This document shows, piece after piece, positions 53,299 through 64,000 of a stretch of 64,000 nucleotides of DNA (the stretch's first letter is position 1; each line of letters starts with the position of its first letter). The notes under the pieces were generated by a model. The model was not told where the DNA came from and searched no databases. It saw only the letters and a list, made by a program, of their open reading frames with translations. The stretch spans positions 4,442,784-4,506,783 of the forward strand of contig CM121341.1 in NCBI GenBank assembly GCA_051530055.1, written 5' to 3'. Origin of the DNA: Neoechinorhynchus agilis. Lineage: Eukaryota; Animalia; Acanthocephala. Both the position numbers and the translations under genes were made by a program.

Positions 53299-54077
53299 AT
53301 GTCTAATAAATCGGAAGGATCACATGTCGCTCTTAAAACTTCGGATAAACAGCAACTGTGCAAAGAGTTTGCTCTTAATGACGAAACTTTGACAAGTGAG
53401 TTGGTCCGATTTTTTTCGTTGTTTGATGATTTAAAGAGAAGGCTACCAAGAATCGTTCAACTTGTTCGACAAAGACGGTGATGGCCGCATAACTCCTGAG
53501 GAGATTAGTGTTCTTTGTAAATCTCTCGGTTATACTATGAGCAAGGCATCAATCCGGAACATGATGATGCTTTGTGATATTGATGGTGAGTGCAGATAAA
53601 TGGAGATACGGTGAGATTTCTTTTTCAGGTAATGGGATTTTGGATTTTAAGGAATTCTTACAGTTGTTAACGAGTGGACGACAAAGGTGCCAAGTAAAAG
53701 ACGAAAATGAGCTCGATGAAATATTCAAGGTTAGATATGATCGCGACAGGGAGAGATATCGACTTTCGTATTAAGGTCTTTGATGCCAATCACGATGGAT
53801 ATATTGATGAGAAGGAGTTGTCTTCTGTTCTACGAAGATTAGGCGAGACTTTGAATGAGCATGAAATTAAGGAAATGATTGTAGTGGCCGATACTGAAGG
53901 AATAGGAAAAGTCAGCTTGAAAGGTACGAATTCTTTGACCTTTTTTATTTTGAAGATTTTCAATTAACCTCTAAAATGAAATCGTATTTTTTTCTAAAAC
54001 TTCCACAGCGCTACTTCTTTTTTGAGGCGGTTCTCTTCTTTAAAAGACGACACAAAGAGTGGGCAAAAAATAGCTAA
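53299..54077 (+). CDS. Calmodulin-like four-EF-hand protein
   Basis: YQESFNLFDKDGDGRI, DIDGNGILDFKEF, VFDANHDGYIDEKE, DTEGIGKVSLKD; four canonical introns; 3' end tentative. Confidence 0.85.
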
Positions 54078-54313
54078 ATAATTAATGGAAACCAAATAAG
54101 GGAAATTTGGATGGCTAATAAGTTGAGACGATTTCTGCACGTTCTAGAAAAGTCGTTGAAACGAATCTGATAAACACATTCTGCCACTTGTTCCTCATTT
54201 AGATTTCAAGAAGATACTGACAAGTAGAAATTCGATTCATTAATAGTCCAGAAGTCTCGGTCAATAAAAACATTATCGTTTTCATCAGATGTATGAGTAT
54301 GCGTCCATCTCGT

Positions 54314-57300
54314 TCACTCAATCAATTCTCCACGCTTCCCTAGTCTTACCGAATATTTCATTCGATCACTGGAAGATTTATGAATTGCGTCGAAGTTGCT
54401 TTCGTTTTTGACTCGATATATCCTAACAATCCAATGTTCGGAAGTGAAAACTTCTTCCAAATATTTCAACTTGATTTGTTTTCGCCCAATTTCAGCTTGT
54501 CGGTTCTGATCATATCCTGGAGGAAGACGCATCGATTGTCGTACGTCTCCGAATCTATAATAACTTAACGAGTACATGAGAGAATTTAGAAGAGCGGGGG
54601 CACCGCCGGCGTCAACTCTAAACTCCCCACGTTCCGTAAAATAATCCGTTTCTCGAATCTCATCGGGAAACTCGCCTTCTGCGATGCGTACCATCCATAG
54701 AAACTTGTTAAGATCATCTCCAGAATATCCAATAAGTCCACCAAAGATCACCAACACATAATCAACGTCATGTTGTCTTAGAATTCGAATGGCTTTACTC
54801 TCGGGTGAAGACATGGCCTTGCCAACCATCGCAATGTGCGTATTGTTCCATGTATTGTTGTCCACGAGAGTGGTCCGGTTACCAAGACCCGCTATCTGGT
54901 ATCCATAATCCCACCAGCTCATTATCCTTGCGTCCGGAGCTGTGTTTCGGCTTAACCACCAGTAACCTTCACGGTAGTCGTCAATAATATGCCGAGATCC
55001 ATCTGAACCATAAGTGCTTATTGATAGAATACGCCTTTGAGGAGAATATTTGTTGGGAAAATTTGAGGGAAGAAATAAATCAGTGATCAATTTAAATCGT
55101 TAGAGATCAAAGCAAAACTAAGATCCAAGTTTGTAGAAGTTTTGACTTTTCTTAGTTTCTCTCTCTAACGATTTAAATTCACCACTGATTTATTTCCGAT
55201 ACTTCAATCATTAGCAAAATTTGAGGGAAGACATAAATCAGTGGTGAATTTAAATCGTTAGAGAAAGGCAAAACTAAAAAAAGTCAACATTTTTACCAAT
55301 TTGGATCTTAGTTTTGCTTTGATCTCTAACGATTTAAATTCATCACTGATTTATTGCTTCCCTCAAATTTTCCCAACTATTAAAGTATCCCAGACGTGAA
55401 ATATCGGAAATAAATCAGTGGTGAATTTAAATCGTTAGAGAAAGGCAAAACTAAGATCCAAATTGGTAAAAATATTGACTTTTTTTAGTTTCTCTCTCTA
55501 ACGATTTAAATTCACCACTGATTTATTTCCGATACTTCAATCATTAGCAAAATTTGAGGGAAGACATAAATCAGTGGTGAATTTATATCGTTAGAGAAAA
55601 GCAAAACTAAGATCCAAATTGGTAAAAATATTGACTTTTCTTAGTTTTGCAGTGATCTCTAACGATTTAAATTCACCACTGATTTATTTCTTCCCTCGAA
55701 TTTTCTCAACTATTGAAGTATCGGAAATAAATCAGTGATGAATTTAACTCATTTTTAGAGAAGAACTGTCATGGAACCACCATAGTGTTTGTCGTGAATC
55801 ACCGCAGTCCGTCGGTCGAGCCTTTGGATGCTCCAACGGACTCATTCGACGGAGACAAACAAATGTGTCCTTTTTTTAGGAATCATCTATAAAAATCGAT
55901 TTCTAAAAAAAGGATAGACTCGAGAAACAATAGGTCCCTGTGTGTGTTAGGCGTAATTCAGTCGTGTAAGATAATACTTGGACTTGAATAGGCGTGACTG
56001 GAGATCCAAGTACAATGCATAAAGAAGGGTCCGACTAAAACAACGAGGACTCCAATGACAAAGAACTTGAAATTGGCATCATCTTCAGTTCGTTTGGTTT
56101 TTTTATCTTCGGTTCGAATGGCGATATAACCTCGGATGAGTCGACTGAGTGCATAAGCTGCGAGGACGCAAACGACTGGAGTGAGTGTGAGCATGAGCCT
56201 GACCATGACACCGGCGAAATAGGAAGCGAAAAGTGCGTAAAGGACGATGAATACACGATGGTCATTGGAATCTCGGATGGCGAACCAAACTCCGGCCGGA
56301 AAAAGGCAGATGAGTACATGTAGATCGAAGTAGAACGAAGTCCACGTTGTTGGTTGATGTTCGGAGACGGACGTGATGATGGGAATGTGGATCTTTGCGT
56401 ATCCGGTGTCCCATAAAGAATAGAATCGACCGGACCAAGGAGCTATGACACCGGCATAAGTGAGTGAGACGACTAAAACGAAAACGACGCCGGCACATGC
56501 TCCCAATGAAAGAAGGAAAAGTCGTTGAACGAGCTTCTGACGTTCTTGTCGTTTAAGTGCGATTTCTTTGATCCACACTAAGAGTTGGTAGGCTTGGATG
56601 AGTCCGAAAGTACCAAGAGCTGCCATGTGCTCGCTTGTTCTGACTGGCTGGAAACCAACAAACGGGATTTGCATGCTTAGCAGTGTCCCGAGAACAAAGA
56701 AAACACTATAAGATCGGTATAGACCAATGGTTCCCAATGTAGTCCAGGTATTCGGGCAAAAAAGTTTTTATTAGCTCAAAAATTACATGATTTATTTGCC
56801 AAATTTAACGAAAGTTGTTTAAATTTTAATTATGTAGAAAAAAATCGTGTACAAAAACTTGGAAGAGCAGAATGTTCTAAAATTTAGAAAATCTTTCGAT
56901 ATTACAGCTATTCGTACTCGGATATTGCCAACTGGTTGTTGAACACTTTTGCGTGTAAACAAACTCAAATCCCAAATAAAGATGAATCAATACTCATCCA
57001 AGAGTTGCTTGCTGAAAAACTGAAACAAGTTTTTAGAACAAAAAATTGTGAATCTCCCGTTTTCGTATTTTTCTAACGGAAAGTGAATTCAGTGGCGTTA
57101 TGGACCTTATAAAAAACGAAGGATCAATGGTAATGCTCGTGGGGATTTACATTTGCTGCTCATTGATCCGGACATGAATACCCTTATCCCATCCAATTCA
57201 TGCAAGTCGTTAAAATTGGGATTTGTTTTAAACGAAGGTTTTTAAATTACGAATTTAGTGGGTTTTTATAAAAAACAGGAAGGATCCATGGACACTTTTT

Positions 57301-60300
57301 TAACTTGAAAAAGGGTCACAGGGCCAAAAAAAGTGTTTTGAAACCACTGGTCTACTCATTGGAGACGAAGGTGCAAATGTGCAGATCCATAAATGGAAAG
57401 AAAGTGTCAGCATCGCCAAATCTGATGCTTTAATGAACCTCCAGATCGTATTTTATAGAAGAATTATTCTTCTGATCGACGAATAAAAAATCGGAGCCTG
57501 TATAAAGACTACTTTCAACGAAATGCAAAAAAATTGAAAGTTCCATTAAAGCTCTGGGTCTTCGTTTTCCTTTGAGGATACCAAAAGGAGAAAAATTGCA
57601 AATGTAAAAGGATCAGTTCGTCTTTGGGTTTAACTTTTTCACCCTTTTGATGGTTCTTTTTATGCCTGAAAAATGTTCAGTGGGCGAAAAAAGTGTAGCT
57701 CTGATTCTTCGCTCCCCCCCCAATGGCCACAACAACGACAAATTCAATCGAAAACAAAGCGACCCGTCGTTTTAAAAGGATTTGGACCAGTTTTAAAGAC
57801 TATTTTCAACGAAATGCAAAAGTAGGAAGTTCCATTAAAGCTCTAATTCTTCGTTTCCCCAGGATGTTTGAGAAGACAAAAGACCCAACTGTTTTGATGG
57901 TTCTTTTTTCTGCCTCCAAAATGCTCCCTGGGCGAAAAAAGTGTAGCTCTGATTCTTCGTTCCCCCCGATGGCCACAACAACGACAAATTCAATCGAAAA
58001 CAAAGCGACCCGTCGTTTTAAAAGGATTTGGACCAGTTTTAAAGACTATTTTCAACGAAATGCAAAAGTAGGAAGTTCCATTAAAGCTCTAATTCTTCGT
58101 TTCAGGATGTTTGAGAAGACAAAAGACCCAACTGTTTTGATGGTTCTTTTTTCTGCCTCCAAAATGCTCCCTGGGCGAAAAAAGTGTAGCTCTGATTCTT
58201 CGTTCCCCCCGATGGCCACAACAACGACAAATTCAATCGAAAACAAAGCGACCCGTCGTTTTAAAAGGATTTGGACCAGTTTTAAAGACTATTTTCAACG
58301 AAATGCAAAAGTAGGAAGTTCCATTAAAGCTCTAATTCTTCGTTTCCCCAGGATGTTTGAGAAGACAAAAGACCCAACTGTTTTGATGGTTCTTTTTTCT
58401 GCCTCCAAAATGCTCCCTGGGCGAAAAAAGTGTAGCTCTGATTCTTCGTTCCCCCCGATGGCCACAACAACGACAAATTCAATCGAAAACAAAGCGACCC
58501 GTCGTTTTAAAAGGATTTGGACCAGTTTTAAAGACTATTTTCAACGAAATGCAAAAGTAGGAAGTTCCATTAAAGCTCTAATTCTTCGTTTCCCCAGGAT
58601 GTTTGAGAAGACAAAAGACCCAACTGTTTTGATGGTTCTTTTTTCTGCCTCCAAAATGCTCCCTGGGCGAAAAAAGTGTAGCTCTGATTCTTCGTTCCCC
58701 CCGATGGCCACAACAACGACAAATTCAATCGAAAACAAAGCGACCCGTCGTTTTAAAAGGATTTGGACCAGTTTTAAAGACTATTTTCAACGAAATGCAA
58801 AAGTAGGAAGTTCCATTAAAGCTCTAATTCTTCGTTTCCCCAGGATGTTTGAGAAGACAAAAGACCCAACTGTTTTGATGGTTCTTTTCTGCCTCCAAAA
58901 TGCTCCCTGGGCGAAAAAAGTGTAGCTCTGATTCTTCGTTCCCCCCGATGGCCACAACAACGACAAATTCAATCGAAACAAAGCGACCCGTCGTTTTAAA
59001 AGGATTTGGACCAGTTTTAAAGACTATTTTCAACGAAATGCAAAAGTAGGAAGTTCCATTAAAGCTCTAGTTCTTCGTTTCCCCAGATGTTTGAGAAGAC
59101 AAAAGACCCAACTGTTTTGATGGTTCTTTTTTCTGCCTCCAAAATGCTCCCTGGGGAAAAAAGTGTAGCTCTGATTCTTCGTTCCCCCCGATGGCCACAA
59201 CAACGACAAATTCAATCGAAAACAAAGCGACCCGTCGTTTTAAAAGGATTTGGACCAGTTTTAAAGACTATTTTCAACGAAATGCAAAAGTAGGAAGTTC
59301 CATTAAAGCTCTAATTCTTCGTTTCCCCAGGATGTTTGAGAAGACAAAAGACCCATGCTTTGATGGTTCTTTTTTCTGCCTGAAAAATGTTCCCTGGGCG
59401 AAAAAAGTGTAGCTCTGATTCTTCGTTCCCCGATGGCCACAACAACGACAAATTCAATCGAAAACAAAGCGACCCGTCGTTTTAAAAGGATTTGGACCAG
59501 TTTTAAAGACTATTTTCAACGAAATGCAAAAGTAGGAAGTTCCATTAAAGCTCTAATTCTTCGTTTCCCCGATGTTTGAGAAGAAAAGACCCAACTGTTT
59601 TGATGGTTCTTTTTCTGCCTCCAAAATGCTCCCTGGGCGAAAAAAGTGTAGCTCTGATTCTTCGTTCCCCCCGATGGCCACAACAACGACAAATTCAATC
59701 GAAAACAAAGCGACCCGTCGTTTTAAAAGGATTTGGACCAGTTTTAAAGACTATTTTCAACGAAATGCAAAAGTAGGAAGTTCCATTAAAGCTCTAATTC
59801 TTCGTTTCCCCAGGATGTTTGAGAAGACAAAAGACCCAACTGTTTTGATGGTTCTTTTTTCTGCCTCCAAAATGTTCCCTGGGCGAAAAAAGTGTAGCTC
59901 TGATTCTTCGCTCTCCCCCCGATGGCCACAACAACGACAAATTCAATCGAAAACAAAGCGACCCTCGTTTTAAAAGGATTTGGACCAGTTTTAAAGACTA
60001 TTTTCAACGAAATGCAAAAGTAGGAAGTTCCATTAAAGCTCTAATTCTTCGTTTCCCCAGGATGTTTGAGAAGACAAAAGACCCAACTGTTTTGATGGTT
60101 CTTTTTTCTGCCTCCAAAATGTTCCCTGGGCGAAAAAAGTGTAGCTCTGATTCTTCGTTCCCCCCGATGGCCACAACAACGACAAATTCAATCGAAAACA
60201 AAGCGACCCTCGTTTTTAAAAGGATTTGGACCAGTTTTAAAGACTATTTTCAACGAAATGCAAAAGTAGGAAGTTCCATTAAAGCTCTAATTCTTCGTTT

Positions 60301-61663
60301 CCCCAGGATGTTTGAGAAGACAAAAGACCCAACTGTTTTGATGGTTCTTTCTGCCTCCAAAATGCTCCCTGGGCGAAAAAAGTGTAGCTCTGATTCTTCG
60401 TTCCCCCCGATGGCCACAACAACGACAAATTCAATCGAAAACAAAGCGACCCGTCGTTTTAAAAGGATTTGGACCAGTTTTAAAGACTATTTTCAACGAA
60501 ATGCAAAAGTAGGAAGTTCCATTAAAGCTCTAATTCTTCGTTTCCCCAGATGTTTGAGAAGACAAAAGACCCAACTGTTTTGATGGTTCTTTTTTCTGCC
60601 TCCAAAATGTTCCCTGGGCGAAAAAAGTGTAGCTCTGATTCTTCGTTCCCCCCGATGGCCACAACAACGACAAATTCAATCGAAAACAAAGCGACCCGTC
60701 GTTTTTAAAAGGATTTGGACCAGTTTTAAAGACTATTTTCAACGAAATGCAAAAGTAGGAAGTTCCATTAAAGCTCTGGGTCTTCGTTTTCCTTTGAGGA
60801 TACCAAAATGGAAAATTGCAAGTAGAAAAGGGTCAGTTAGTCTTTGGATTTAATTTTTCACCCTTTTGATGGTTCTTTTTTCTGCCTGAAAAAGATCGAT
60901 AATTTGGGAATCATTGGTATAGACGATTAGTGTAGCGGCCCATTAGAATGAGAACGAAGGCATGTAGAGGAATCATGTTGATAATGAACACGTATCCTCC
61001 CCATGCTGAGACCATGTAAGCATAGGACAAAGACGTTAGGACGGCATAGAGTATCCGGCCGGTTTTGAGAGACTTTATCCACAGAAAAAAGGTGAACATC
61101 ATAGCGAATATGGCGATTCCTTCGTTATCGTAGCTTCCGGCGACCGATCTACTCAAGTATCCCGGCGCAACCGCGACGAACAAGGCTGCAAGGAGACCGC
61201 TGGACTGGTCAAACAATTCGTTCGTTAGTAGATAAGTGGCCACGGCTGTAAGTCCGCTGAACACGGGTGCCAGAAACACGCAGATTTCTCGAATATGGAG
61301 CGGAATCCCAATCAAGTGGGATATCGAGTGAAGAAGCGATGACGTCAGCATTAGACCTGGGAACACAGTTCCGCCGACTATTCTTCCCAGCGGATACCAT
61401 GCCCTTTCGTCGAACCAATCGACAAAAGGATAGAATCCCCGTTCAACCATAAATCGAGTAGAACGGTAATTAAACCAAGGATCGTACTCATGGATGATAC
61501 TCTCGAATCGAAGTACGCTGAATAATCGAATTCCAAATCCAAGAAAACATATGAGGACAAGAGATGCGATTCGAAGCAAGTTTTGGGATTCTTGCGATGA
61601 TACCAAACACAGAAGTCGGCCATGTAATGATTTCCGCTCTGAGATCGATTCCATTGATCGCAT
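54314..61663 (-). CDS. STT3B: Oligosaccharyltransferase catalytic subunit, STT3B-type, in three open segments (60917-61663, 55967-56724, 54314-55020)
   Basis: [58 protein letters not shown]; no stops or frameshifts within the segments. Confidence 0.93.
55021..55966. mobile_element. 946-bp TA-flanked insertion with degenerate TIRs and internal palindromic modules, inside STT3B coding sequence
   Basis: TA at 55019-55020 and 55967-55968; ends ttgatagaatacgcct / aggcgtaattcagtcgtg. Confidence 0.8.
56725..60916. mobile_element. 4192-bp non-autonomous hAT-like element carrying a satellite, inside STT3B coding sequence
   Basis: TIR caatggttcccaa / ttgggaatcattg (12/13 match); perfect 8-bp TSD gtatagac at 56717-56724 and 60917-60924. 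Confidence 0.93.
57500..60895. repeat. Tandem array, about 245-bp unit, 13 near-identical copies plus degenerate edges
   Basis: atggccacaacaacgac recurs at 57723, 57969, 58212, ... 60654. Confidence 0.97.
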
Positions 61664-61761
61664 TTGTGTGTGTTTTAGGATTTAAACAGATTTTTTGTCG
61701 CACTCGATCCGGAAGAATTTTAAGAAATGTGACGTCATTCTAGAAACCTTTTGTTTCAGTT

Positions 61762-61836
61762 AGGCAATGTTGCTAACGTGATAGCAACAGCCGAGGAAGG
61801 AGAGAAGTTAAGATTCTGCGGACGGTGGTGATTGCA
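61762..61836 (+). mobile_element. Very short 3'-end fragment of the CRE subfamily at 49530
   Basis: ggcaatgttgctaacgtgatagcaacagccgagg...ggtggtgattg matches the reverse complement of about 49534-49605. Confidence 0.8.
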
Positions 61837-61848
61837 CGTTTTGTACTT

Positions 61849-61880
61849 TATTATTAGATTATATTATTATTATTATTATT
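61849..61880. repeat. (ATT)n microsatellite between two tail-to-tail CRE 3' ends
   Basis: ttattattagattatattattattattattatt. Confidence 0.8.
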
Positions 61881-62086
61881 TCGCGCCTCATACAACATAC
61901 GCACAATCAATCTCTTAATTCCTCTTTCTTGCTTGATCTAATGTCTCGGGCCCAAGATGGCTGTGAGTTGTGGGACGATCTCTTAAATCATTATTAGATT
62001 GCAGCTGTGTTTTGAAAAAAATAGCGGTGTTTGATTCAGAAATTTTTTTTAAATAATAAGCATTTTTTTTAAAAAGTTAACTTATA

Positions 62087-64000
62087 TTATTCTGAATTGT
62101 CCTTCACCGTCCCCAAGACACTCGCTGCGTTTCCTCGCTGGATAGCCAAGGATATGTTCTGTACTAGGAACGAGCGAGCCCTCCTGTCATTGGTCGAGTT
62201 GATCAGTCGATGCCCCAGTTCGAGAACAAAACTCCTCGCCGCACGTTTGAAAGCTCCTAAGGTTTCCACTGCGAAGGGGACAAAATGATGAGAATTCGTA
62301 AAATCAGCGTATTTTGCAACCTTACGGAGCTCAGCTGCTGATGCGGCTCCCCCAGCCCCGGAGGATGCATCTCGCAGATTGCTGGCTGCAAGGGAGTCGA
62401 CGCATGTTGCGTCCCATAGGAGACATCTCCCCCTGCTCCAAGGAAAAACGGTAACTCCATCCGGCCTACGCCCATCGATCCTGCAGATGTTGCTAGGCTC
62501 GAGGATATTCGGAGAGTTAGCCGTTTTCAAAGCGCGGCTCAGCAATGCGTTTATTTCGGCGTGTCTAGCAAAACGGCCACTTGAGCATTTACAGGCTAAT
62601 CCGTGCCTGCCCGAGGGGTCAACTTCCGTCCCGCATCGGCAGGTGTGAGGGATACAAACCGGGAGCCCGAGCCTCAGAGACACTGCGATTCTGAGAGCCT
62701 CGCCGTCTAATCTCGAACCGAGATTTGCTGATGGTACAGCTTTCAACCAGGCGCCGGACTCTTTGCAGGAAACTGCAGTTAATCGCGTTCTATCCACGTC
62801 GGAGAGCGAGTCAAAAAGTGAGGTGTGAACACGCTCCACTAACGGAATGTCCCACGATTTCTGTTTTTCCGGGAGGTCTGGAATCTTGTCGAGGTTAGAC
62901 AGGGACATCCAAAGATGAAGAGCGGGCTCCAGGCTGATGTCCTCCTCAAAATTATGTTTCAAAATCAATCTGGAAAGGCGCTTGGACCTACTAAGAGACG
63001 ATAGAAAGGCTGGAAGCGCAATGGCTGAGCTGGCACGAATACCGATCCCTCCGTAGCTTGTGGGCAAAGATGCCTGGGTCCAGCCAGTGTCGGGGAGCTT
63101 AATATTAAGGATCTTGCATAGACCATCCCTTAAAGAACCATCAATCTCTCTCAATTCGGGCTGACATTGAAAGGAAGGGGTTGACCGCAGTTTATGGAGG
63201 ATGCGTGGAATGAAGATGCAATTTTTTAAAAGGAAGAGAGCATCGTGAGGGAAAAGTTCAGAGGCCCTTGAACAGATGAGATCAATGGAAGGTCTGATTT
63301 TCCTGATATCAGCCTGCATATTCTCCTCGAGAACGCAGCTTCCCAGCAGTTCTAAGCTGGACTTGGTGATAAGTCGGATATTAGGTGCGGCCTTTTCAAA
63401 CTCTCTCAAAATTTGTGCGCGTTCCTCGTCCCCACAATTCAAAACCAAAATTTCGCACTTGCTTGGGTTCAGTTTGAGGCCAATTTTTTTACATTCTTCT
63501 AAAAGAACCGTTAAATCTTGTAGGACTTCAGACGGGGAACCTCCTAGAGTAGCGTCATCCAGATACCAGGCGTTGAATGGTGATCGAAGAGATTGCGCCA
63601 GATTGTTTGTCGTCAGAGCAAAACCTAAAGGCCCCAGAGGGTCCCCTTGCTGCACACCCGATTGAGACCAGATTAGTTCATTATTATATACGAGCGGGGT
63701 GTGAGAGCAATATGCTGACTGAAAGTAGGGGAGAAGCTCTGGAATAGTGTTTCCGACTGCTGAAATTAAGATGCCTCGATCGATAGTGTTGAAGGCATTT
63801 GCGAAATCGCACTTCAGGATTACCTGAACGCCTGTACCAGAATTAATAAAAGAACGCAGCGCGTGGACTATAGCTTCTGCTCCACAAGGAGAGCAACATC
63901 CGAACTGGACGGGCCTAAGGATCTGGCCTGCTTTTTCCGCGACCCTTTTTGACAGAATCTTTCCGGTGAGACGGCGAAGGGTAGTTCCGATTGCTATGGG
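62087..64000 (-). mobile_element. CRE-type (RLE) non-LTR retrotransposon with an open ORF extending beyond the window
   Basis: Frame open from 64000 to the stop at 62087: DFANAFN, QQGDPLG, WYLDDA, QASLP..YGGIG, HTCRCG..HGLAC, RPDG, WDAT, FAVETLG. Confidence 0.93.

Follow-up and report, generated by a model that had tools for sequence, protein, structure and literature searches.

The STT3B gene of Neoechinorhynchus agilis, a parasitic worm of the phylum Acanthocephala, is interrupted within a codon by a 4192-bp element that is missing from the mRNA, and it is very likely that this element is removed exactly, at the RNA level and at non-GT-AG sites. All coordinates given here are positions in the window, which is the 64,000-nt stretch of N. 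agilis DNA that was analyzed. The element lies at 56725–60916 on the minus strand, from which the gene is read; it was skipped by RNA contigs and contained in DNA contigs and reads. It behaves as a non-canonical intron whose exact loss lets the gene still work.

The first part of the interrupted coding exon (60917–61663, minus strand) is an open reading frame that starts with an ATG at 61663 and ends in the first copy of the target-site duplication. Its best solved-structure match was residues 69–291 of human STT3B (E = 1.5e-98), and the Pfam STT3 domain (PF02516) was found on its called product. The second part (55967–56716, minus strand) matched residues 293–569 of human STT3B (E = 1e-92), and the last coding exon (54314–55018, minus strand) is an open reading frame with the catalytic motif WWDYG. 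Both interrupted pieces matched human STT3B best, with 333 and 314 bits vs 313 and 215 bits for STT3A. The full-length colinear similarity and the WWDYG motif point to STT3B as the interrupted gene. The end of part 1, ..GRYTNRLY, was aligned with ..QRYSKRVY291 of the human protein, and the next piece begins at residue 293. The alignment is therefore gapless once the element and one duplication copy are taken out; together with the exact RNA join described below, this agrees with the preliminary description of this DNA, which had claimed that such a removal restores STT3. The joined reading frame of 2202 nt (733 aa) is intact and carries both WWDYG and DNNTWN. A single product, a 250-aa STT3 fragment, was called from this locus, and a search for other DNA contigs with the truncated exon-1 product returned the window's own record alone. 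The preliminary description had also argued that STT3 is normally essential and that tolerance of the insertion implies either precise removal or a second copy. The essentiality was overstated, as not all systems strictly require STT3B, animals usually having STT3A as well; the implication is supported by an mRNA that lacks exactly the element and one duplication copy.

The two copies of the 8-bp duplication, GTCTATAC on the gene strand, are located at 60917–60924 and 56717–56724 (both minus strand) and are identical. Each copy is followed by a further C, making the direct repeat effectively 9 nt. On the minus strand, the sequence reads ..aatcGTCTATAC/CAATGATTCCCAA.. at one end of the element and ..TTGGGAACCATTG/GTCTATACcgatct.. 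at the other. The inverted ends are 13 bp long with 12 matching positions, and consist of CAATGATTCCCAA on the 5′ side of the gene strand (60904–60916, minus strand) and CAATGGTTCCCAA, read on the plus strand, on the 3′ side (56725–56737). Most of the interior is occupied by a tandem array at 57645–60789, composed of 12.9 copies of a 246-bp unit with 97% matches, whose DNA read depth summed over the array was approximately threefold that of single-copy sequence; the unique 0.9-kb part showed single-copy DNA depth at ≥95% identity. The element contains no transposase ORF and no Pfam domain, and no ORF longer than 50 aa was found outside the array. A transposase remnant in the array ORF was considered and rejected, as the Pfam hits were summed noise with no stretch passing. 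A search of the window for the inverted-end pattern without mismatch gave no further occurrence, and neither other copies of the element nor an autonomous partner with the same ends were found there. In an Rfam scan of 54000–62000, the element matched neither a ribozyme nor any other known RNA family. Members of the hAT superfamily insert at targets of the consensus nTnnnnAn, and their short inverted ends start with YARNG. In the duplication GTCTATAC, position 2 is T and position 7 is A, and the inverted ends start with CAATG, both of which fit this consensus; 8-bp duplications are also made by P elements and a few other superfamilies. The term hAT-like is hence used here for a candidate membership based on the signature of an element that lacks a transposase. 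The claim of a 4.2-kb hAT-like element splitting an STT3B codon was confirmed at these coordinates, and the element is best explained as a young non-autonomous hAT-like DNA transposon that inserted into the STT3B coding exon.

RNA was represented by contigs assembled from public poly-A reads of two worms (runs X1 and X7), which were labeled “RNA?” and whose RNA nature rests on exon-only coverage. The contigs of X1 (2855 nt, depth 182) and X7 (depth 538) both joined position 60916 to 56715 with no letters in between and with a 9-nt ambiguity. Exactly 4200 nt were skipped, which correspond to the element and one duplication copy, and this exact loss restores the 733-aa reading frame with an uninterrupted codon series. 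The RNA depth over the exons was 155–182 for X1 and 350–732 for X7, namely 182 and approximately 350–573 in part 1, and 155–182 and 665–732 in part 2. Inside the element, the X1 depth was 0 in most bins and 2–7 in three, and the X7 depth was 0–7 in the unique part and up to 16–22 in the repeat bins. An unspliced X7 contig at 56695–57016 had a depth of 6.8 vs 538, or approximately 1%. These are contigs, which drop rare isoforms, so that minor imprecise products may exist. The preliminary description had proposed RT-PCR across 56600–61000, and the public RNA reads already show the exact join over this interval. Of the outcomes that it had named as speaking against it, expression from an empty allele only and a canonical splice deleting transmembrane residues did not occur.

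Owing to the direct repeat, the 4200-nt deletion can be written in ten equivalent registers, of which the first five are GT/TG, TC/GG, CT/GT, TA/TC, and AT/CT, and the last five are TA/TA, AC/AT, CC/TA, CA/AC, and AA/CC. None of the ten is GT-AG, GC-AG, or AT-AC. A U2-type GT-AG or GC-AG intron was rejected because no register of the RNA-defined deletion qualifies, and a U12-type AT-AC intron was rejected because the register starting with AT ends with CT and the register ending with AC starts with CA. All GT-AG, GC-AG, and AT-AC pairs within approximately 100 nt of the junctions were further enumerated, and none of these canonical pairs reproduced the RNA join; any in-frame, stop-free GT-AG or GC-AG pair in this range would remove 81 nt or more, and hence no fewer than 27 residues. 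The ten registers and this enumeration agree with the earlier claim that no usable AG acceptor exists and that the GT donor is paired with TG. Nested (stwintron-like) splicing was rejected by reasoning over the same registers, as was A-to-I editing as a source of an AG or GT, since neither can supply the missing 3′ AG. The cut register is not readable from the sequence, and the one register with GT..TG ends leaves room for a spliceosome acting with a non-AG 3′ site. Normal recognition of splice sites appears to be intact, given the ordinary short GTGAGT...YAG introns of the neighboring EF-hand gene.

A second non-GT-AG intervening sequence is present in the same gene at 55019–55966 (minus strand). 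It is 948 nt long with TA at both junctions and is also exactly removed, as the RNA contigs of X1 and X7 go from 55967 straight to 55018 downwards. Its ends can be read as CA..TA, AC..AT, or TA..AA, with no register starting with GT, and an AG following a pyrimidine tract approximately 16 nt upstream of the junction used is left unused. Pairing between its ends is weak (z = −1.9). Sub-threshold hairpin matches to plant microRNA families were recorded by Rfam inside this second insert only. Two RNA-verified inserts with different duplication lengths in one gene constrain any mechanism, since a fixed sequence rule does not fit both.

The rival that survives best is removal by the ordinary U2-type spliceosome with relaxed end recognition, as in the tunicate Fritillaria, whereby the element would be a GT..TG intron (register 0) and the hairpin would merely approximate the sites. 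This register begins with GT, a YTRAY-like CTAAT and a pyrimidine run are located 28–48 nt before the 3′ junction, and the single exact product is what a spliceosome would give; furthermore, tunicate transposon-derived introns with inverted ends and duplications use a modified U2 spliceosome. However, the 5′ site GTCTAT poorly matches GTGAGT and GTTAGA of the neighboring ordinary introns, and the 3′ end is TG, yet a good AG (cttatag) 19 nt downstream is unused. The second insert offers no GT-starting register and skips its AG after the pyrimidine tract, and neither insert shows the AG..AC or AG..AT ends typical of Fritillaria. We regard the relaxed spliceosome as unlikely, though it is the only rival to retain appreciable weight.

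Whether the removal occurs in RNA was evaluated with DNA from two samples (X6 and X13), which are other than the RNA worms. X6 DNA contigs with depths of 113–117 crossed both junctions (55750–57567 and 60760–61700). In the raw X13 DNA reads, no joint or loose end reached the listing threshold of 3 reads at either junction, and the depth of the single-copy part of the element (approximately 13–20) was equal to that of the exons (approximately 7–22). The insertion was present in essentially all DNA copies sampled and appears to be fixed. The crossing of both junctions by DNA with no empty site indicates removal at the RNA level rather than heterozygosity or DNA excision, which answers the question of heterozygosity raised in the preliminary description. 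A polymorphic insertion, with the mRNA derived from the empty allele alone and the transcripts of the interrupted allele degraded, would be compatible with the difference between the DNA and RNA samples and with the element-bearing allele being polymorphic in the DNA pool. Nevertheless, an empty allele at 50% should have given approximately 7 reads with an empty-site joint or clipped end in X13, where none reached 3 at approximately 13–19× (Poisson p ~0.02), and the X6 contig (117×) passes unbranched through the junction with the element depth equal to the exon depth. The exact join was found in both RNA worms, and the unspliced junction at 1% in X7 indicates that this worm carries and transcribes the interrupted allele. 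A 100-fold loss of transcript, moreover, is rarely achieved by nonsense-mediated decay. This explanation is thus very improbable.

Somatic removal from DNA, whether through excision by a transposase or through programmed DNA elimination, with the mRNA transcribed from the repaired gene, is just as improbable. An exact loss bounded by TA or by the duplication does recall the eliminated sequences of ciliates. The DNA was nevertheless extracted from whole worms, which are mostly somatic, and neither of the two samples showed an empty site; footprints, rather than an exact restoration, are what hAT excision normally leaves, and unspliced RNA across the junction exists. The weakest explanation ascribes the join to a chimeric contig or to reverse-transcriptase template switching between the 9-nt direct repeats, for which direct repeats beside a hairpin are the classic setting. 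It has a nearly negligible probability, because the same join was obtained in two independent runs of poly-A RNA with junction contigs as deep as the exons, the interior of the element was at approximately 0 in most bins and at most approximately 4% of the exon depth, other fragments should still have contributed interior reads had a jump occurred in cDNA synthesis, and, if the libraries are those of PMC12690905, their kit fragments the RNA before reverse transcription.

Rather than a relaxed spliceosome, we favor excision guided by pairing of the element ends, which would resemble SOS splicing or the introns of euglenids. The ends were predicted to pair at −31.6 kcal/mol vs −14.9 ± 2.9 kcal/mol for shuffled sequences (z = −5.8), and the predicted stem extends through the duplication into the exon flanks. 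In the pre-mRNA, both junctions would be brought together by the paired inverted ends along with the adjoining duplication copies and exon flanks, which are partly self-complementary. The cut and rejoining would then be set by the paired structure rather than by GT/AG recognition. That the route is structure-guided and spliceosome-independent is close to an even chance, whereas the explanation as a whole, in which a hAT-like insertion is lost exactly at the RNA level with end pairing guiding the cut, seems to us reasonably probable. More tentatively, acanthocephalans may possess a dedicated, exact, hairpin-guided RNA cut-and-ligate pathway, independent of the spliceosome, that removes any inverted-end transposon together with one duplication copy. 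Such a pathway would represent either SOS splicing that has evolved precision or the animal equivalent of nonconventional splicing in euglenids, and would be indifferent to the terminal dinucleotides, to the duplication length (2 or 8 bp), and to the size of the insert (tens of nt to 4.2 kb).

Exonic elements of the hAT family are lost from RNA also in maize, where Ds is reportedly spliced from the wx and adh1 transcripts, as studied by Wessler and colleagues in 1987–1991. That removal is said to use cryptic GT-AG sites in and near the element ends and to be imprecise, with a few codons left or deleted, unlike the exact removal without GT-AG observed here. SOS splicing removes DNA transposons from mRNA (C. 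elegans Tc1, Tc3, and Tc4, and human HSMAR2), is triggered by pairing of the inverted ends at non-GU-AG sites with an efficiency that can exceed 99%, depends on AKAP17A, CAAP1, and RTCB, and resists spliceosome inhibition (Zhao et al., Nature 2025, PMC12779559). It was found with mutant alleles and reporters, and is imprecise, with numerous sites used within or close to the inverted ends and with indels and many out-of-frame products as a result (PMC12779559). The STT3B element resembles these cases as an exonic inverted-end DNA transposon lost from RNA at non-GU-AG sites with ends able to pair. It differs in that one exact junction was the sole product detected in two runs, though among contigs, which drop rare isoforms, and in that a conserved gene carries the apparently fixed insertion. 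The SOS elements are of Tc1/mariner types; no hAT-type element having an 8-bp duplication was reported among them.

In Fritillaria borealis and its relatives, approximately 95% of introns are non-canonical, mostly with AG..AC or AG..AT ends, and are processed by a modified U2 spliceosome, in which U2AF is divergent and the methylation of snRNAs is changed (Henriet et al. 2019; PMC13326754; review PMC11282704). These tunicates resemble the present case as animals whose genomes hold transposon-derived inserts with inverted ends and target duplications, at species-specific positions, that are exactly removed without GT-AG, but the STT3B element has no AG-starting register, the neighboring gene has ordinary GT-AG introns, and the phylum is different. 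The nonconventional introns of euglenids, whose mechanism is unknown, coexist with conventional ones, range in length from tens to thousands of nucleotides, and have variable non-canonical borders, duplication-like junction repeats, and paired ends by which the junctions are brought together (PMC11282704, PMC12501133). Their pairing involves characteristic CAG/CTG positions, and they leave as full-length circles once the conventional introns have been excised. The STT3B element shares with them the non-canonical borders, the pairable ends, and the direct repeats at the junctions; the CAG/CTG positions and the circular product are described for the euglenid introns, whose hosts are protists. 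Introners of Micromonas, Aureococcus, dinoflagellates, and Amoebophrya occur in large families and supply or co-opt canonical GT/GC-AG sites (PMC11282704, PMC7789003). They are likewise inverted-end DNA transposons with target duplications that turned into introns upon insertion, whereas the STT3B element has no usable canonical pair and its unique part has single-copy DNA depth. Our literature search found no publication describing such an intron class and no paper on Acanthocephala that deals with non-canonical introns; in the two N. agilis genome papers, the word “intron” does not occur.

If it holds, the present case is a natural, apparently fixed bilaterian example of a kilobase-sized exonic transposon neutralized by exact RNA-level removal, which needs no canonical splice signals. 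It links three so far separate subjects, namely SOS splicing, the spliceosomal non-canonical introns of tunicates with their specific ends, and the nonconventional introns of euglenids. If the dedicated pathway is true, DNA transposons could become fixed in coding exons of conserved genes. Interrupted genes of this kind will be broken by predictors that insist on GT-AG, as exemplified by the 250-aa STT3 fragment called at this locus, and such broken predictions may make the reported gene loss in this lineage look larger than it is.

The 4192-bp element (56725-60916) that splits a minus-strand STT3B codon was lost from RNA exactly, together with one copy of its target-site duplication, with ~99% efficiency. 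Four runs were mapped to 55750-61700 of the window, namely X1 and X7 (both labelled "RNA?"), X13 (Illumina WGS raw reads), and X6 (DNA contigs, possibly of the source sample). The metadata of the read runs (many single-sample RNA runs of 2025, WGS, and Hi-C) fit PMC12690905, to which the coded runs may belong. X1 gave a 2855-nt contig (depth 182) whose letters 78-864 correspond to 61700-60916 and letters 865-1613 to 56715-55967. Exactly 4200 nt were skipped at this joint, with zero letters between the two parts and a 9-nt ambiguity, and the identical joint was obtained for X7 at a depth of 538. Exon bins showed depths of 155-182 (X1) and 350-732 (X7). Within the element, the X1 depth was 0 in most bins and 2-7 in three, and that of X7 was 0-7 in the unique part, with repeat bins reaching 16-22. 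This confinement of coverage to exons indicates that X1 and X7 are genuinely RNA. The X7 graph branches at 56724/56725, where an unspliced contig (56695-57016) has a depth of 6.8 versus 538 for the spliced one (~1%); the RNA evidence consists of contigs rather than reads, in which minor isoforms would not show. Template switching of reverse transcriptase is an unlikely source of the joint, because the element interior is essentially absent from RNA and the junction depth matches that of the exons in two runs; an artefact in general is very improbable.

The STT3B frame runs on the minus strand from an ATG at 61663 to AAT CGT CTA TAC, after which the element begins with CAATGATTCCCAA from 60916 and ends, 4192 bp on, with TTGGGAACCATTG at 56725. 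The second duplication copy, GTCTATAC (56724-56717), follows, and the frame resumes with CGA TCT TAT AGT. Human STT3B is the best match of each flanking piece (residues 69-291, E 1.5e-98, and residues 293-569, E 1e-92), and the join falls without a gap between residues 291 and 292. When 61663-60917, 56716-55967, and 55018-54314 were joined, a single 2202-nt ORF of 733 aa was obtained, which contains the WWDYG and DNNTWN motifs. The 5' UTR adjoining the ATG upstream is polymorphic (61664-61668), with G>A at 61668 and a TG insertion behind 61664 that was seen in X1 RNA, X6 DNA, and 16 of 28 X13 reads, the assembly having the minority form at the insertion site. One X6 DNA contig departs from exon 1 at 61182 into unrelated sequence, near a local depth bump in X6 (253 vs. 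113) that is absent from the raw-read run; a chimeric contig, a partially duplicated copy, and a further insertion allele are candidate explanations. Immediately upstream of STT3B lies a 522-aa reverse-transcriptase-like ORF of a non-LTR retrotransposon (62087-63655, minus strand), and fragments resembling it occur at 49.8-51.7 kb.

In DNA, which came from different samples than the RNA, the insertion was present. X6 contigs of 1907 nt (depth 117, 55750-57567) and 1018 nt (depth 113, 60760-61700) run straight across the junctions. X13 exhibited no 4200-nt joint and no loose ends at either junction at a listing threshold of 3 reads, and its depth over the element's single-copy portion (~13-20) equalled that over the exons (~7-22). 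A 50% empty allele at ~15x would yield ~7 joint reads, for which the Poisson probability of observing ≤2 is ~0.02. The modest X13 depth is alone compatible with an empty allele below ~20%, but the unbranched 117x X6 contig speaks against one. The insertion is hence at or near fixation in the sampled DNA, and the removal occurs in RNA. An mRNA from an empty allele is highly improbable, and so is somatic DNA excision.

The duplication copies (60917-60924 and 56717-56724) are identical at 8/8 positions, and a C that follows each copy raises the effective length to 9 nt. Between the inverted ends, 12 of 13 positions agree, with no further mismatch-free occurrence of these ends within the window. 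In the interior, a tandem array (57645-60789; 246-bp unit, 12.9 copies, 97% matches) accompanies ~0.9 kb of AT-rich, unique sequence; no transposase ORF or domain and no matching Rfam family were found in the element. Since the 8-bp duplication fits nTnnnnAn and the ends start with CAATG (YARNG), the element is by signature a non-autonomous hAT-type transposon, a membership that would take a transposase to prove. The array unit equals 82 open codons, giving a repetitive 400-aa ORF antisense to STT3B (plus strand, 57723-58925); its Pfam matches were rejected as summed noise, and the frame is probably open by chance. A 33-nt insertion variant at 56915 (3-4 DNA reads) and a unit-to-unit skip of 2934 nt (57764-60699, 3 DNA reads), likely a short-array allele, were detected in the worm pool, indicating that the element-bearing allele is itself polymorphic.

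The ten equivalent cut placements start/end with GT/TG, TC/GG, CT/GT, TA/TC, AT/CT, TA/TA, AC/AT, CC/TA, CA/AC, and AA/CC. No canonical pair (GT-AG, GC-AG, or AT-AC) reproduces the observed join, and the stop-free in-frame GT-AG or GC-AG pairs nearby each delete at least 81 nt. The observed join ignores a good acceptor (cttatag, with the cut after it), located 19 nt downstream from the junction of register 0. Nested two-step splicing and A-to-I editing were rejected by reasoning from the register sequences, as a terminal AG is obtainable in no register. A second insert of 948 nt (55019-55966) was also removed exactly from RNA, with TA at both junctions; X1 and X7 contigs join 55967 directly to sequence starting at 55018. 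Its registers are CA/TA, AC/AT, and TA/AA, and an AG after a pyrimidine tract ~16 nt upstream of the used junction is skipped. Its interior comprises foldback repeats, with sub-threshold Rfam matches to plant microRNA hairpins.

A structure-guided, spliceosome-independent cut-and-ligate route is our tentative reading, at just under an even chance. The element ends are predicted to form a duplex of -31.6 kcal/mol (shuffles -14.9 ± 2.9, z -5.8), which comprises the inverted ends, two + two more pairs in the facing duplication copies, and the exon-flank ATCG/CGAT. Such paired ends would draw the junctions together and set the cut positions. A spliceosome with relaxed ends is a less likely route. 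The cut register may be the spliceosome-like GT/TG or AC/AT, the latter being the only terminal pair common to both inserts. A fixed sequence rule is disfavored by the unlike ends of the two inserts and their duplications of 8 vs. 2 bp.

No paper on non-canonical introns was found for Acanthocephala or rotifers, and neither of the two N. agilis genome papers mentions introns. SOS splicing, the RNA-level removal of exonic DNA transposons, shares the trigger, non-GU-AG sites, and efficiency with the STT3B element, but is explicitly imprecise (PMC12779559). Fritillaria introns likewise derive from transposons and are removed exactly, and differ in their AG..AC/AT ends and remodelled spliceosome. 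The closest phenomenology is that of euglenid nonconventional introns, with paired ends, junction direct repeats, and any length; these occur in protists. Introners, unlike the STT3B element, supply canonical sites. Maize Ds is removed via cryptic GT-AG sites. Within 3 kb of the non-canonical introns there are also canonical ones, as a plus-strand calmodulin-like EF-hand gene has three GT-AG introns of 41-46 nt (53396-53436, 53586-53628, and 53730-53775; GTGAGT/GTTAGA...YAG), whose excision, judged from sequence, restores the DxDxDG EF-hand loops. From these ordinary introns, standard splice-site use seems to be intact in N. agilis.
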